A stretch of 61,607 nt of DNA, filler included, from Choristocarpus tenellus KU-1152 (Eukaryota > Protista > Phaeophyceae): assembly GCA_964200185.2 (NCBI GenBank). It is 8 parts of 8 records of this genome, joined end to end, with 100 filler letters (N's around TTAATTAATTAA, not from the genome) between each part and the next. Parts side by side here need not be neighbours in the genome. Positions count along the whole stretch, not along the records: positions 35,576 to 48,651 come from CAXNAD020001595.1; 7 more parts are not named here. One strand, 5' to 3'. Each line of letters starts with the position of its first letter. The stretch's first letter is position 1. Both the position numbers and the translations under genes were made by a program. This document shows, one piece after another, positions 36,111 to 48,596 of this stretch. The notes beneath the pieces were generated by a model, which worked only from the letters and a program-made list of their open reading frames with translations, was not told the DNA's origin and did no database searches.

Positions 36111-36368
36111 GAGTGAAAGTATCTTAGAGGGTACAAGTTTTTTCCACTTTGTCCATTCGGGGCTTGGCCTCCCACGGGATTTCAATGGCTTTTTACGTAC
36201 TCCAAAATATTTCGGAGTACGTAAATGTGTACGTTATGAAAAGGTGTGTTTGGAACAAGGATATTGACATCTCCTAACAAACATGATAGTCAAAATTACA
36301 CCAAAATTGCAACATTGGATTTTGGCCTCCAAATGGATGCAGATCTACCCTCTAAGATACTTTGACTC
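36111..36368. mobile_element. MITE family B with AACC flanking duplication
   Basis: aacc|GAGTGAAAGTATCTTAGAGGG ... CCCTCTAAGATACTTTGACTC|aacc. Confidence 0.9.
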
Positions 36369-39300: not shown

Positions 39301-40899
39301 TCACACCTTTCCTCTACAGGTCATCCAGAACTCAACGCAGTTCCCTTCCGTAGGTAAACATCTCAATCATGGTTCGGACCACTACTTCACATGCACCTGC
39401 TCCATCACAGAAGGCTGGGGTTCAAGGGGAGAGAAGAGTGGGTGAGTGTGAGGGGATTCTTGGAACAATAATAAAGGACAGAAAAACGTATTGAACCAAG
39501 TGCAGTGTAGGAAGTGGTGACAGAGATAGTATGGGGAACATAAAAATTGTGGGGGAGAGTAGGGGCAATTCCTAGGACTCTCTCTTACAGTGTATCAGAA
39601 TTTGATCCCAAAACATCACAAATATGGGCATTTAGTATAATATTTCTCAAGCCAAATGTGGCCAACTCGTGCTATGATTAATGATTTGGCATCAGAACAA
39701 ATTACCTCCACATGGAAATAATGGTTCCCATATCCAACTTGCCACTAAAACATTGAAATTTCATATTTTTGTGGACATATACTACAGATCTGTATTCAGC
39801 AAACTTTTTACATACACACCACATGTAGCCCGAGAAAAAGCACCATGCATTCCTAAATTTGTCATTTTCGGGGACCAAATTTTCACTGCAAGAGATGGCC
39901 TGAAAACATGAAATTTGTGTTGCACCTAGAGCATATTCCTATCTACAAAAATTGCAAAAAATGTAACGTTTCACCCCTAACATAACTAGGGGTCATAATA
40001 TATGTGTGCAATAAACTTGCCAAACAGTGGTTGGCAAGCTGTACAATCGGCATTGAATTTTTGGTGAACTATGTACAGGTGGTGATAAGGGGATAAACAG
40101 GATAACAGTTAGATACAGAAAACGAACGAAACAAGGACTTTCTGGTAGGATATCATGTTCAACTTGTTGAAAAAATGTAGCTAAGGATGCTAAACTTTAT
40201 GGGCCAGGCTAGCCCACTTCCTTCTGAGCCATAGCTACTCAATATACACAAACTAATCTTCTGATAGCGATGGAAATCATCACAGTTACTAGAACACAAC
40301 CTCTCCAAACATGCCGAGTGTTTCCTCTGAGTAGGAACTGAAGTATCAAAAATTATTGAAGACAATATATTCTGCTGGTGCCTACCTCATCAAATGGTTA
40401 CTTGATTCACTCACTTACAACATAAATGTGACGAAAAAAATGTTGGGGGATGACTGTTCCATGTAATTCACTAGAGAATCTACAGCACATACAGAAATAA
40501 ATACAAGATGAGAATCATTAATACTAAAAATATTCATTCTATTTTCCCCTACCACATAAAAGACTGCCTACTGATACCAACAAAATCAGTGCATCTGTGG
40601 AATCCAACATACTCAATAATACAAAGGCACTCCGGTACTTACTTGCACAGCATACAAAATGTGACATCAGCGACACTGTCCAACCTCAGTAATTTAATTT
40701 CATCGATCAATGGATATTTCATCTGCACTTGGAGAAATACACCGAAACATTGCCTATCACTTTCTAATCCCCACCCTATCCTTCTCAAATAGCAATCTTT
40801 CGTAACTCTGTGATCACTTCTAGGATTTACCCTCAGTGATGACACCTACCATTCCAACACATGACTACCCCTCCTCCACCACTCCACAGGTACAACTCT

Positions 40900-41139
40900 G
40901 CCTCAAAGAATGGATTTAGTTGGTCATCAACAATTGGCAGACATAGTTTGTCATCCAGCAGCCACCTCCGGCACCAGCAAGGCACAGCAAAACCGCGAAA
41001 ACCACAGTCACCCATGCCCTGGGGGCTGCCCTTACCACACTCTTCACACCACTACCAAACACCTCACATGAAGTTGATGGATAAGAAGGGTGATGTGCAG
41101 GAGCAAGGGTGGAGCTAACTACCAGAGTCCATCATAGGC
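40900..41139 (-). ncRNA. Long box C/D snoRNA-like gene, copy 1 (240 nt; D box mutated to TTGA)
   Basis: Minus strand GCC-t-ATGATGG ... TGGATGAC ... TGATGA-CCAACTAAATCCATTCT-TTGA-GGC; terminal stem tgcc/ggca; internal hairpin with G:U pairs. Confidence 0.7.
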
Positions 41140-42176
41140 AAGGTATTGTATCCCTGGGACTTACTATGTCGAGGCACGTACAAAAACGCATACTTGAACA
41201 TTCTTATCCATCTCTCACTCAAATACATACATATATTAAGACCACACAACACTTAGTTTTACTTTCAAGGGTGGGGCACGAAGAACCTGGACAAGAGTTA
41301 CACATTCTACTCCCCCGGTTCATCCCCAAGTTTTAGATATGGTACAAAATATGTCTGATATGTGCCAGGTGATGGGATAACAGGAACATACAGTTCATCC
41401 AAGTGAATACAACCATTATCTTGGTGTACTGCTAACTCAAGATATCCCTTGCTTCCACTGATCAAGACATCAGGAGTTGCCAGGTTAGCACGCCGGTAAA
41501 AATACCTGTTGGTGAGGACGTAAGTCAAAAACCAAAATATTTTCATGGATCCCTTCCACATACTGTTCTGAACTGCTATCCAACTGGGTTCCTACTAATT
41601 CTCTTCTTTATGGCGAAAGGTAAACCCTATAGCAAGCAACAAATACAAGTGATTTAAGACAAATACAATGCCCTATCTCCAAAAAAAACAATACATTGTA
41701 AGCAGTGTAAAATATGACAATTTACTCCTTGCAAACCAAAACCCTTCCCAACTTCCAAGTATTGATGCACAACAGCAACATAAGCACTTCACTTGCCATT
41801 TTCTTTCCTGTCTTGAATTGGCATCACAAAATATACCACAAAATTCCAGCACAAGAAATGATGAGATTTTCAGCACTTCAAAAGAGGTTTCTAAGGGATG
41901 ACTCTTGCAAAAAGGCAGACCCGCCAACAACGAGTGGAGTATAACAATTGTGTGCGCTCACTGTGCTACTGCTGGTATTTTAGTGCCCATCACAAAGACA
42001 GCACTGAACCTCTCAAGGGATACAACAATAGCACACAATGGACACACCTCATTCAGAGTTGTCAACACCAATATAACTTTATACTTCCAACATATCAACA
42101 TTTTCAGGTGCAATATACTATGTATAAATTGCAAATCAAAATCCTTCATCCTCCCCCCCAACCATGGAAAGTTCTA

Positions 42177-42472
42177 GCCTCAGAGAATGGATTTAGTTGG
42201 TCATCAATCTTTGCAGATATAGTTTGTCATCCACTCATCAATCCCAGCATCAACGGACATGACAAAACAACCACGAAAACCGTGGTTGGTCACATCTCAA
42301 TGACTAGCCATCAATATCCCCCTCCCCTCCCCATCACATCCCATTCTCCCCTACAGGCTAACCCCCAATGCCTCGCAAAAAATGAGGAACAGTGGGGTTG
42401 AGGGCAGGGAAGGAGAGGGATGGAGAAAAGGGATAGGACAGGAGGGATCAATAAGAAGAGTCCATCATCGGC
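42177..42472 (-). ncRNA. Long box C/D snoRNA-like gene, copy 2 (296 nt)
   Basis: GCC-g-ATGATGG, then a long pyrimidine/purine hairpin, then the AACCACG-gtttt-CGTGGTT hairpin, TGGATGAC, and TGATGA-CCAACTAAATCCATTCT-CTGA-GGC. Confidence 0.8.
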
Positions 42473-43007
42473 CAACTCTCTCTCTACTGCAATTAATCCC
42501 CTTTGGTCATAATGTCCACATAATTGCAAAATACAAATTTCCTTCTGTTTTACAGTGTTGAATGAGGTCACTTCACATTCTACTTCCACTCATGCAATTA
42601 AGAGTGCTGTCATTGATATCCATTTCCCAAAATCGGCTGTGAAACCAACCCTTGATGCTGTACAAAAAATATACAGCTCTTAAGTGAGAGTAATTTTTTG
42701 TGTTACCAAAATATTTGAGCATTGGAGCCAAGAGGATTCAAGCCACTGGATGCAAGGGGGTGAAAAATAAGAAAAACTGGGCAGCAACATCACCTCATTA
42801 CTAATGCAAAGTCACTTCATAGAGGAGAACAAAATATTCAATTGTAACCAGTACCTTGAAACACATTCCAACATTTGGCAAGCGGTGATACCTCTGCTGC
42901 TTTGAAGAGGTGCTATGTATCTCCATGATGGAGCTCAATATTAAAATGTGAGGTCTTTCCTCCAATAACCTCAAGCCTTCCCTACCCACTGAGCTGAAAA
43001 AGCGCTT

Positions 43008-43259
43008 GCCTCAGAGAATGGATTTAGTTGGTCATCACATAGCGGCAGACGTTTTTTGTCATCTACTGAAACGACCCGGCGCTTGCAAGTCATGGCAAAA
43101 CTGCGAAAACCGCAGTTGGCCATGCCCTGCAGACTGCCCACTAAAAACTCTCCCTTTTTGCATGCTCTCACTTCCGTCCTCCAATAAAGGAGAGGAAAAG
43201 GAGCCTACGGTAGGGTGGAGCGAAGTGAGTGGAGCAAAACAGCAAACTCCATCATTGGC
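43008..43259 (-). ncRNA. Long box C/D snoRNA-like gene, copy 3 (252 nt)
   Basis: GCC-a-ATGATGG ... CATGGCCAACTGCG-gtttt-CGCAGTTTTGCCATG hairpin ... TAGATGAC ... TGATGA-CCAACTAAATCCATTCT-CTGA-GGC. Confidence 0.8.
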
Positions 43260-44121
43260 GGGCATTTTCATTCCGTGTGTGGGATATATTAGAAGATTCA
43301 CATGTACACGTTAACATGTACCCAATTTTCATATCTTCACAGGGGCATTGAAGTACAATTTCCTGAAGATATTCAACAAAGTTTTTCATCTTGAAAACAA
43401 AGTCTGTACTGCCATATTTGATAATATCTTCTACAACTCATGCTGAAACTTGCCACAGAAAAGCCATGCAGAGTCCAAGACTCGGCGCTTCTTCTACGCC
43501 AAAAAATGAAGAGCCAAAAAGTAACACGCAATGAAGCTGTATCACAGTATCAATCTTCCAGGCGTAACTGAATGCCGCACAATAAAACATGTCTTTCCAC
43601 AAGCCAGCACAAGCCAGAAAGGAGTGCACATTTCTTGCTTTGTGTCAGAGGTCCACTCAGCGATACGTAACCTCTTACGCCAAGAGAGTTGCATCCCTTC
43701 AAAATTCACAGTCACAATTCTGCAGCTTCTTGCTTAGCTTAGCTATTGACTCAATTAATTTGAGGTAGAGGCCTATGCACTCCATCCCATAAGATAACAC
43801 CCTTGACAAAAATATGGGATATGGGTCAGACACATGATATTCACAGAGGTTACTGTCAGCATGTACGGGATGGCACAGTAGCCCTGCTTAATGCATCACA
43901 TAATGAGACACCAAATCACTTTATTTCGCACAAAAACGGCATGAACAAAACTTGGGGGATTTTACATTCCCTCTAAGTAAGACCCCCCCCCCCTCCATGC
44001 AATATCTCTCGTACCAACTGTATATTAATTGTCTTTATGTGATATTCCTAGAGTAAGGAAACATTTGGCATTAAACATTATGCACGCACCGTCCATTGAG
44101 TAAGCGAATCATGGAAATAAA

Positions 44122-44378
44122 TATCCAAAGTAATTGAGAGATAGGCAGGTTTGGGCCCATTTGCATTCTAATGCCACCTTTTAACCCTGTGTAACAAACC
44201 CCGTTTCATTGCTTTTTATGGACAGTAGCATATACAAAATTGACATTACCGTTTCCACATACAAAGTGACACCACAATAGAGCAAAGGCTCATTCTGAAA
44301 TTCAACAAAATTACCTCTTTTTTCCATTCTCGGGATCCTTAAAATGCAACCTTGCCCACCTCTCAATTTCTTTGGGTC
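44122..44378. mobile_element. MITE family C
   Basis: TATCCAAAGTAATTGAGAG ... CTCTCAATTTCTTTGGGTC. Confidence 0.8.
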
Positions 44379-45028
44379 AGATAATTAAGGACACTCTTCA
44401 GGAGAGCGGGTACTTCTGGCTGAACACCAGATATGGGAACGCTAACAATCCAATCCCTTTAACAGTTGAAAGACTTGGGCTTTGGCCCTATCTTAAACGA
44501 TTAGAAACTTGATAACACAACTATTTACTAAGATCAATGCATGCTGGATTTTGGATTATTTGGATTAAATCAGAAAGTATTTGCGCTAGGTCTCACCCTC
44601 AGGCACACTCGATATATTGAAAAAAGAGCATGAAATGACATACAAGGTGCCAAGATAAACAAGGGTGCACCCATTCACCATTCACAACTTTCTAATTCTA
44701 AGCCGATGTATATCTGAAGATCTCTCGTGTTCACATGAACCAGGAACAGAACTGCTTCGAAGAGAAGAAAGGGATCTCGATAGGTGCATGGATCTATAGA
44801 TGTTGCACAACAACCCGCAGGCACGAACATCCCTCCCTCACCTTGCTGAGTTGCACTTGCACTTAGGCAACATTGGAGGCATGGAGCTTATCAGCCATCC
44901 ACCAGCCCAAAATACGTCGAAATTCTGTAACGTATACGTTTTGAAGGAACGAAAGACTATATCCGCCCGAATGTTCAGTGCGATGGAGATGAGGGGTGAA
45001 TATCATGCAATTGCGAGGCACATCTTAC

Positions 45029-45725
45029 CTGGTGTGGATAAAGGCGGCTGATAATCGCTTGTCGCCGCAAAATCTGCAGCTGCTCTTCCCCCTTAGCAAA
45101 AATTTTCTCACTTTCGTTCGGCGAGCATTCACGCGCCTTGACAAATCCCAGTCTTGCGCGCCTGATAGCGTAGTCTCTATAGTTGTAGTCCTTTCCCGTG
45201 AAGAGTAGAGTCAAAAGGTGCGGGGCATTGATGCATCGGTAGGCGATCGAGACACGGACGCGGTGTGGGGAGGGACATAGAGTTGGAGTAATGCTTCCAC
45301 TTATATGACTCAGGGGTAGGGGTTCAAGCCAACGTTTCCAGCAGCGAAGCGAAGTCAAGGAATGAAAAAACGTGGAAATCAATGTAAGTTAAAAAGAAGT
45401 GTGTCCGATTAAGCACACTCCTTTGACATATGTTGTAAAAGGAAACTAGGATAGCAAAGGGCATCGTTATGCCAACGATGAGCGAAAATATATTCTTGGC
45501 ATCCAGAAGATAGACATCAAAGAGAGGTAGATGTTCTCGAATTCCAATTTTGTTAGGAATAGGTTGGTAGGTCCGCCATGATTCCCTCTTTCGCTTCAAA
45601 ACACAAACAGAAGCGTAATTTCGATCATATAACAGAAAATAAGTGTCACTAACCATGAGCTGGCGTCCCTCTCGAAGTAATTGTCTATACAGGCCAAGAG
45701 CGGCCGTTCTAGACGGCGGAACCAT
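45029..45725 (-). CDS. LYRM4: LYR-motif protein 4 / ISD11 (mitochondrial Fe-S cluster assembly, NFS1 partner); last exon not located
   Basis: Exon1 45725-45654 MVPPSRTAALGLYRQLLREGRQLM|gttagt. Exon2 45190-45029 DYNYRDYAIRRARLGF...GEEQLQILRRQAIISRLYPHQ|gtaaga. LYR, DYN.R.YA.RR...F and L..LRRQ..IS.LY motifs are typical of ISD11. Confidence 0.9.
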
Positions 45726-46729
45726 GTTGATACAAAGTGTGGTGGTGGGAGTGTCAGGAACCTTCGAGCAATCCTGTATGTAGTAAAAAGGTGTATGTAT
45801 GTTTTTTTAAGAAACCCTCCCATCTCTTTATAAACAGTAGTAGTATTAATAGGATGTAATGGTTCCTCCTTGAACTTGACAGATAACAAAATACAAGTAT
45901 AATGTCCACTCTCCACTCCTTCCGCGACTTGATCCTTGCTGGGGCTATGACTCTCCCAGGCTTAACCCATGACACTTAGCGGCTGTCGGGGTGAGATGGA
46001 TGGACCACCACCCTCGCAGTTTGGTTTCCTGTGGTCGTTTGAAGAGGAGAAAAGGCAACAAGACGTATTGAAAGATACCTTTTCAGATCGTGTGACTTTC
46101 CTCTTATTATAATTGAAAAAGGTGACTATCATTTAAGATTTGATCCCCACTGTGGCTATGACTCTCCAAGGGTTGCCAAATGACGCGTGACCGCTTTTGG
46201 GGGTCGGAATGATGATAGACGCCCTCCATCGCCGTTGAGTTTGAAGAGGAGTAGAGGAAAAAGATCCGATGACGGATGTCATTTCGGGGACATGGTATCT
46301 TCCTCAGCATCTTATCATTGTGTTACTTCCTCCTATTCGAAAGAGAAGAGGTGACTATCATGCTTGCCATGTAAGGCCCTCTACCTTCACCTGAGTGGAG
46401 TTGCTAAAGTTAGGTGTGTTTGGTTTGTTTTTTCCTGTCTACTATGATTTCCTATCATATGACTTTTGTGTCTATCTGCTAGAGTCCTCTCACCCCAGTT
46501 TTCCTGAGGAATCCATGAAACACGTGGATGCAGGATGACAGTTGAGCAACTTGCACGTGGGAGATGATATGTACGTGTTGGTAAGCTGAGGGAGGAGGGC
46601 GCAGTGATGTGTATACAATAACTTACTTGTAGCAACACATGTTGAGGATTTAGGATGTGGCTAATGATCATTTCACTCTCGTGTCCCACCTTCAGATAAT
46701 CTAGTTTGTCCTGGGTCTAGTCAACCCAA

Positions 46730-47663: not shown

Positions 47664-48004
47664 GAGTCAAAGCATTTAAGATGGTAGGGCCGGGTCGGTT
47701 CGGGGCCATAAATCCAATGTTCCGATTTTGATTCATTTTGGTTGTCGTGTTTGTTAGCAAGTGTCAATATCCTTGCTCCGGACACACCTTTCATAGTCGT
47801 ATACATTTTAGGTAACTGTGTTCGCACAGAAAAGGTTCAAAGTATCTGGGGGGGGGGAGGGTCTTCACCAGGGTGTCCATTCGGGCCCTGACCAGGAGAA
47901 GTGCATTTACATTCAATCCGGAAAAGGGCATAAAAAAAAGTGGGAAGCCAAGCCCCGAACGGACAAATAGGGAAAAACTCCTACCCTCTTAAATGCTTTG
48001 TTTC
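47664..48004. mobile_element. MITE family B containing a family A fragment (about 47835-47915)
   Basis: Family B TIRs at both ends; internal GGTTCAAAGTATCT(G)n...GTCCATTCGGG. Confidence 0.75.
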
Positions 48005-48182
48005 AGAAGTGACTACTCTTGCACTTACAAAAAATGTTAAGCCTTGATCTTGATTTTTTCCCTCCCTTGACAAATCTACAAAATGTCTTTGGGCATATAA
48101 TAATATGTATGTCATGTACTAATAGTAGGTATGGGTAGACACGAAATAGTACAGATTTGTAACTGCTATCAGAATCCACTGT

Positions 48183-48385
48183 GAGCTGAACCAGTTGAGA
48201 GGTGGGCAGGTTTGGACCTTTTTTGCGTTCCAAGCCATCTTTATTACCCTGTGCAGTACACTATCTCATTGCTTTATGCGCACAATAGTGCATGCAAAAT
48301 GAGTATTCCCCCTTTCCACACACAAAGTGGCACCACAATTAAGCAATTGCTCTTTCTGCAATTGTACAAAATCGCCTCTTTTTGC
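48183..48385. mobile_element. MITE family C, truncated
   Basis: GAGCTGAACCAGTTGAGAGGTGGGCAGGTTTGGACC...; right TIR missing. Confidence 0.7.
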
Positions 48386-48596
48386 CCCCAAGCGCACCCC
48401 AAATTTACCAAGGGCTCACCCCTCTACTGTTCAATTTCATTCTCTCCTGGTACTATCTGGAGTCCAGGGGGTACTATCTGGCAGAGCTTCCCTACACGTT
48501 ACCTCCTCAGCGTAGGCCCCCCCTAATACTGATGCAAAGCTCTGTGCGTGTGAGTAGCCTACAGTACCCCGTCCGGGCCATATTAGATCAGCAGTA

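Follow-up and report, generated by a model that had tools for sequence, protein, structure and literature searches.

Three long box C/D-like copies in one intron

The window analyzed here is a stretch of 61,607 nucleotides, in eight parts joined end to end, from the brown alga Choristocarpus tenellus (assembly GCA_964200185.2). Three long snoRNA-like copies (A, B, and C) lie on the minus strand of one of its contigs, where the original prediction had placed them, and are 252, 296, and 240 nt long. The sole gene called on this contig encodes a LYR-family protein, which we take to be ISD11/LYRM4-like and mitochondrial. Its NCBI model is marked partial; the gene model was searched exon by exon, and an unannotated third exon emerged when the gene was compared with its Ascophyllum orthologue. 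The features, in order along the minus strand, are as follows.

45654-45725, minus strand: host exon 1, ISD11/LYRM4-like LYR protein
45029-45190, minus strand: host exon 2, Complex1_LYR domain (PF05347)
39415-45028, minus strand: host intron 2, 5,614 nt, GT..AG, containing all three copies; joint seen in run X2
43259-43008, minus strand: copy A, snoRNA-like, 252 nt; box C 43255-43249, D' (CUGC) 43048-43045, C' 43037-43032, D 43014-43011; stem P1 43246-43231/43077-43062, GUUUU loop 43110-43106, UGACAAA 43061-43055
42472-42177, minus strand: copy B, snoRNA-like, 296 nt; box C 42468-42462, P1 42459-42444/42245-42230, D' 42216-42213, C' 42206-42201, D 42183-42180
41139-40900, minus strand: copy C, snoRNA-like, 240 nt; box C 41135-41129, P1 41126-41111/40969-40954, D' 40940-40937, C' 40929-40924, D (UUGA) 40906-40903
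39382-39414, minus strand: host exon 3, 10 codons and a stop codon, not in the NCBI model

The copies share one order of elements, every member of which was found as first described: GCC, ATGATGG, a variable hairpin, a hairpin with a GTTTT loop, RGATGAC, TCTGC, TGATGA, a 17-nt block, box D, and GGC. Box C (AUGAUGG) is non-canonical and identical in all three copies, and the variant still permits a G:U pair in stem II; the GCC/GGC terminal stem, likewise present in three of three, joins the C and D boxes. Box D is CUGA in copies A and B and UUGA in copy C. The C' box, UGAUGA, is canonical, and the candidate D' box (CUGC, or CUGU in a fourth paralog) is a non-canonical one placed by geometry, 6 to 7 nt upstream of C'. 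The C'-guide-D pattern occurs three times in the window, versus no occurrence in 100 shuffles. External stems continuing past GCC/GGC were marginal and not copy-specific, being equalled by 2%, 7%, and 33% of random flanks.

A scan against 4,227 Rfam models at E ≤ 10, which had been proposed as a check on the prediction, matched no snoRNA family to the copies; we presume that a SNORD17 model is among those in Rfam. Features of U3 or U14 were likewise missing, both as conserved sequence 5' of GCC and as an Rfam match. The shared boxes and their order support the assignment of the copies to a putative box C/D snoRNA family, earlier undescribed and without an Rfam model.

One public run, X2, which is presumably an RNA run, contains a contig that joins 45029 to 39414 at a depth of 573, versus 4 to 22 over the intron; the joint of exons 2 and 3 was absent from two other public runs covering the stretch. 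The joint in X2 places all three copies in sense inside a single intron, where the cluster begins 1,769 nt from the donor and ends 1,485 nt from the acceptor, with 535 to 1,037 nt between copies. An X2 contig also extends, at a depth of 401, about 2 kb past exon 3 (39382-39414), which suggests a long 3' UTR in the host mRNA. The X2 contig carrying the exon 2-3 splice runs unspliced for at least 60 nt into annotated intron 1 (45191-45250), reflecting either intron retention or a choice of assembly path.

At the ISD11 orthologue loci of Ascophyllum, Discosporangium, Chrysoparadoxa, and others the element was absent, several of these contigs ending within intron 2, and it was also absent from intron 2 in two brown-algal-type orthologues, that of Ascophyllum and one other, for which this intron was read completely. 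The empty orthologue introns make the cluster position look lineage-specific. Pattern scans returned 72 matches in metagenomes and 19, 1, and 32 in viral collections, all of them chance-like in collections nearly devoid of algal DNA; subsequent searches excluded matches from human gut metagenomes. None of 102 loci matched when a covariance model built on the 3' half was run on them, and no homologs in other species were found in the searched collections, which hold almost no algal DNA.

Three DNA or RNA runs cover the stretch and provide depth and variant tables. At about 20 to 46, depth over the copies is close to that of single-copy sequence; a MITE located in the host intron exceeds 6,000. 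By depth and variants the family has about four members, versus hundreds for the neighboring MITE, so that the hundreds of dispersed copies that would mark a SINE or MITE are not found here. The differences listed over the copies in the three runs all trace to one fourth paralog, seen in runs X1 and X3 at single-copy depth as a variant aligned over 42177-42265. It differs from copy B at 12 positions and by small indels, with C', the 17-nt block, D, and GATGACAAA retained. No second haplotype is visible in the flanks, and we therefore read it as a paralog located elsewhere in the genome, not as an allele.

These counts bear on the idea that the copies are a nonfunctional repeat, be it a MITE, a SINE, or a decayed duplicate. 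Brown-algal introns are repeat rich, one repeat sits in this very intron (44125-44379), and the flanks of the copies lack homology, as separate insertions would predict. Against this stand the near single-copy depth and the single additional paralog, a conservation confined to boxes and antisense elements, stems that covary, and a strand-specific fold. Copy number already largely refutes a repeat origin, to which we give only a very slight chance. Tandem duplication of a larger unit was also considered and rejected, as the copy flanks have no sequence in common.

The repeats around the gene are themselves of two kinds. The MITE-like element at 44125-44379 has terminal inverted repeats of about 29 nt and a depth of up to 6,866, versus about 20, and a related copy lies 4 kb away at 48182-48386. 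A second MITE-like family, with terminal inverted repeats of 21 to 23 nt, occurs at 36111-36368 and 47664-48000 in opposite orientations.

A Y-shaped insert and a short core

Both hairpins of each copy are enclosed by a stem of 16 bp, P1, which runs from 2 nt past box C to the GA of RGAUGAC. This stem, the host intron, and a complement to SSU rRNA are newly recognized here, beyond what the original prediction contained. In copy A the resulting Y-shaped insert is laid out as follows.

43062-43246, minus strand: insert of copy A, 185 nt, with P1 enclosing P2 (the variable hairpin) and P3 (the GUUUU-loop hairpin)

The insert measures 230 nt in copy B and 173 nt in copy C and in each case sits between C and D'. 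Over the three copies 42 of 48 possible P1 pairs form (12, 15, and 15 of 16), and seven columns of the stem have changed on both sides. Slid registers give only 17 to 27 of 48 pairs, none of 100,000 shuffles of the strands attains 42, and every 5' strand of P1 pairs most stably with the 3' strand of its own copy. The covariation of P1 is strong, as read from three related sequences in a register found by eye rather than by a formal covariation test. Within the insert, the two double compensatory changes reported earlier for the GTTTT hairpin were confirmed, copy C retaining the stem through G:U pairs. The claim of structure specific to the minus strand was borne out as well: the copies fold 15 to 25 kcal/mol better on the minus strand than on the plus strand, with folding z-scores of -3.8 (copy A), -3.8 (copy B), and -2.4 (copy C).

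Removal of the insert leaves a core of 66 to 67 nt that is ordinary in size, comprising box C, UGACAAA and six further nt, D' (CUGC), 6 to 7 nt, C', 17 nt, and D. The inserts are 50 to 62% identical among copies, compared with 83 to 89% for the 3' cores, in agreement with the earlier observation that the boxes and the 17-nt block are nearly invariant while the spacers have diverged. A composite C/D-H/ACA scaRNA of the U85 type was considered and rejected; an ACA is present downstream of P1, and no copy has an ANANNA H box at the hinge. Since the H box is missing, the insert is not an H/ACA domain, and it appears to be a structural add-on held in place by P1.

Complementarity to LSU and SSU rRNA

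The rRNA used for comparison was a proxy, namely eukaryotic rDNA on contaminant contigs (with LSU, SSU, and 5.8S confirmed) rather than the rDNA of C. tenellus; the context of the LSU target is nearly identical across the proxy loci. Bacterial and archaeal genome records hold at least 82 such stretches of eukaryotic rDNA, evidently contamination. Two adjoining antisense elements were located in each copy.

43016-43024 (copy A), 42193-42185 (copy B), and 40916-40908 (copy C), minus strand: LSU guide AAUCCAUUC; D+5 is 43019 in copy A
43024-43032 (copy A), 42201-42193 (copy B), and 40924-40916 (copy C), minus strand: SSU antisense element ACCAACUAA, complement of 18S 1285-1293 (yeast numbering)

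Positions 2 to 10 of the D guide form 9 bp with LSU GAAUGGAUU. The D-adjacent duplex with D+5 paired was the best or joint-best match at six of six rDNA loci, and shuffles place the chance of such a duplex at about 0.9%. The length of 9 bp is at the lower limit for C/D antisense elements (about 9 to 10 nt). By landmarks, which fit at 14 of 14, the base at D+5 is yeast U2314; an alternative placement at yeast U2347, the snR65 target, was rejected with only three of nine landmarks fitting. Yeast U2314 equals human U3797 and Arabidopsis U2304 (PMC8351944, supplementary table 2), so that the prediction that D+5 falls on the U of GAAU corresponding to human U3797 is upheld. In humans this base is Psi-m, listed under a newer numbering as 3818 (PMC9941101, supplement), an offset of 21 that agrees with Am3804/Am3825. 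In yeast it carries Psi only, guided by snR86 (PMC5699541), and in Arabidopsis Psi is listed and Nm is not (PMC8351944, supplementary table 2). The copies probably mark the LSU U2314/U3797 equivalent for 2'-O-methylation, as judged from the guide and its register.

The other candidate guides fared less well. The D' guide looks inactive, as the copies have no rRNA target in common there. RGAUGAC could serve as an accessory guide by pairing with LSU 2288-2294 (7 to 8 bp), a possibility that was downgraded because its R-G-A already forms the end of stem P1 and because such pairing does not account for the AAA that comes next.

The 17-nt block had been described as a single LSU guide. Its complementarity to the LSU holds, but only nine of the 17 invariant nucleotides pair there, and the rest match SSU helix 34. 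The SSU element ACCAACUAA, a perfect 9-nt complement, begins at the final A of C' and ends at the initial A of the LSU guide; together the two elements tile the invariant block, with one A in common. The SSU site, 1285-1293, lies in helix 34 and starts 5 nt to the 3' side of ac4C1280. ACCAACUAA is under selection, and we put the odds of a real pairing between it and helix 34 of the SSU, within one and the same pre-rRNA, at about even. It may be a chaperone contact, an acetylation contact, or a chance match.

The reading that we find best, with a probability of roughly 0.68, is that the copies are paralogous intron-encoded C/D methylation guides doing the job of SNORD17 with a different layout. 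In its favor are a target that is a known modified base, an intronic location in sense with the host, and the low copy number of the family. Against it are the 9-bp guide, the non-canonical C and D' boxes, the UUGA of copy C, a site with no 2'-O-methyl listing in yeast or Arabidopsis, and the eight other invariant nucleotides, the invariant UGACAAA, and the invariant GUUUU loop, none of which the LSU guide explains. Short guides (PMC3116282), non-canonical C'/D' motifs (PMC5464676), and intronic snoRNA clusters in algae and plants (PMC7671301) all have precedents.

Two adjacent invariant antisense elements directed at different subunits, a large structured domain, weak boxes, and a guide of the minimal 9 bp would also suit a chaperone snoRNA comparable to snR190 or U14, which would bind the pre-rRNA at helix 34 of the SSU and at domain IV of the LSU and order its folding, with little or no methylation. 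We consider this unlikely, given an LSU duplex that lies exactly in the methylation register, on a base methylated in humans, and an intronic, multi-copy arrangement that is typical of modification-guide snoRNAs.

A further reading gives the strand two chemistries: LSU methylation and, through ACCAACUAA, the presentation of SSU C1280 to NAT10/Kre33 for acetylation, the task that snR4 performs in yeast. The perfect pairing with 18S 1285-1293 includes the snR4 GS1 site, 1286-1290. In shuffles the SSU match alone has a chance of 1.2 to 1.4%, and both 9-mers together about 1e-4; the SSU match emerged only after several conserved elements had been examined, which brings its real chance nearer to 3 to 4%. 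The SSU register places C1280 unpaired opposite D+5, and a second shared match, of GACAAA to 18S 1301-1306, is collinear with the first, though both may be coincidence. Like the copies, snR4 and snR45 are long, with variable helical bulk and a non-canonical D', and Drosophila SNORD13 acetylates with a single element (PMC9226516). That fly RNA, however, keeps the internal element and not a GS1-type one. No Watson-Crick complement of 5 nt or more to 18S 1264-1284 is shared by the copies, leaving GS2 missing; GS1 of snR4 is at its 5' end, before box C, whereas ACCAACUAA comes after C'; and where the copies carry their insert between C and D', snR4 has its helical bulk between D' and C'. We give the proposed double role a small chance. 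No snR4 homolog is known in humans, and whether helix-34 acetylation there is RNA guided is an open question (PMC9670809); the missing homolog and the single-element Drosophila guide together leave acetylation a possible, if improbable, function.

Finally, both rRNA matches might be coincidental, the true target being some other algal RNA (an snRNA, a pre-rRNA spacer, or an mRNA) that matches all 17 nt. Such a target would account for 17 of 17 invariant nucleotides at once, and the snRNAs and spacers of this alga lie outside the searched sequence. It would also require two independent perfect rRNA 9-mers, one in the exact D+5 register, to have arisen as they do in about 1e-4 of shuffles, and we regard the chance as slim.

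Relation to known snoRNAs and significance

We take SNORD17 to be the guide of 28S U3797 and to act from its D' box. The original prediction of a SNORD17-like family stands with respect to the U3797-equivalent target, the guide at box D, and the large insert; the evidence does not support descent from SNORD17, with no Rfam match and an insert between C and D'. SNORD17 (HBI-43) is, like the copies, an unusually long C/D RNA (10.1101/037259), and both are intron hosted, SNORD17 by SNX5 (PMC3025573) and the copies by a different gene. The long part of SNORD17 falls between D' and C', as do its positions 58-71 (10.1101/037259), whereas the corresponding spacer in the copies is only 6 to 7 nt. The copies differ further in their 9-bp guide at D, in their several members per intron, and in the extra SSU element.

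With snR4 and with snR45/SNORD13 the copies have in common a long C/D RNA, a non-canonical D', and variable helical bulk, and with snR4 also an antisense element over 18S 1286-1290. Two regions of yeast snR4 pair with 18S: its 5' end with 1286-1290 and an internal loop with 1264-1271 (PMC5464676). The copies have only GCC-N before box C, no GS2, an insert located elsewhere, and an added canonical methylation guide. As the second pairing of snR4 is absent and the positions differ, the copies do not belong to the snR4 family. They resemble snR47, snR70, snR75, and snR87/U16 in combining a short guide with further conserved rRNA-complementary elements, and snR47 carries elements antisense to 18S as well as to 25S (PMC3116282). 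In the copies, by contrast, the extra element adjoins the guide in the C'-D interval, and its complement lies in the other subunit rather than beside the methylation site. The clusters of Chlamydomonas, Ostreococcus, and plants (PMC7671301) likewise place several snoRNAs in one intron of a protein gene; here the organism is a stramenopile and the host a mitochondrial LYR protein.

If the copies are methylation guides, they would be transcribed as part of the ISD11/LYRM4-like pre-mRNA, freed from the intron after splicing, and then trimmed to the C/D K-turn. Because three RNAs share one intron, endonucleolytic cuts between them would be needed, as in the green-algal and plant clusters. The RNAs would be loaded with Snu13/15.5K (at the K-turn), Nop56, Nop58, and fibrillarin. 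The 9-nt D guide would pair with LSU domain IV and fibrillarin would methylate the U at D+5, the product at the U2314/U3797 equivalent probably being Psi-m, as in humans.

Stramenopile snoRNAs are barely catalogued, and the family described here has no Rfam model. It predicts brown-algal 2'-O-methylation of an LSU base that carries Psi-m in humans and for which Psi alone is listed in yeast and Arabidopsis, a modification that would be either ancient and lost more than once or of two separate origins, each apparently accompanied by an oddly long guide. The layout is also unusual: the insert separates C from D', and the two antisense elements, one for each subunit, abut. Were the doubtful case of a chimeric 17-nt strand true, guiding both fibrillarin methylation (LSU U2314/U3797) and NAT10 acetylation (SSU C1280), it would extend helix-34 acetylation guides beyond budding yeast and point toward the missing human guide. 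If the SSU match is due to chance, the family would be an ordinary but undescribed long methylation guide.

A diverged tandem pair with units of about 211 to 229 nt lies just upstream of the LYR gene, at 45926-46361. Neither unit has a D box after its rRNA match or a match in Rfam. On the minus strand, both contain 11 nt perfectly complementary to the conserved helix-69 region of the LSU (GAGAGUCAUAG), for which chance is plausible (roughly 10%), together with a C-like AUGAUAG start and an internal CUGA; they could be another snoRNA-like pair.
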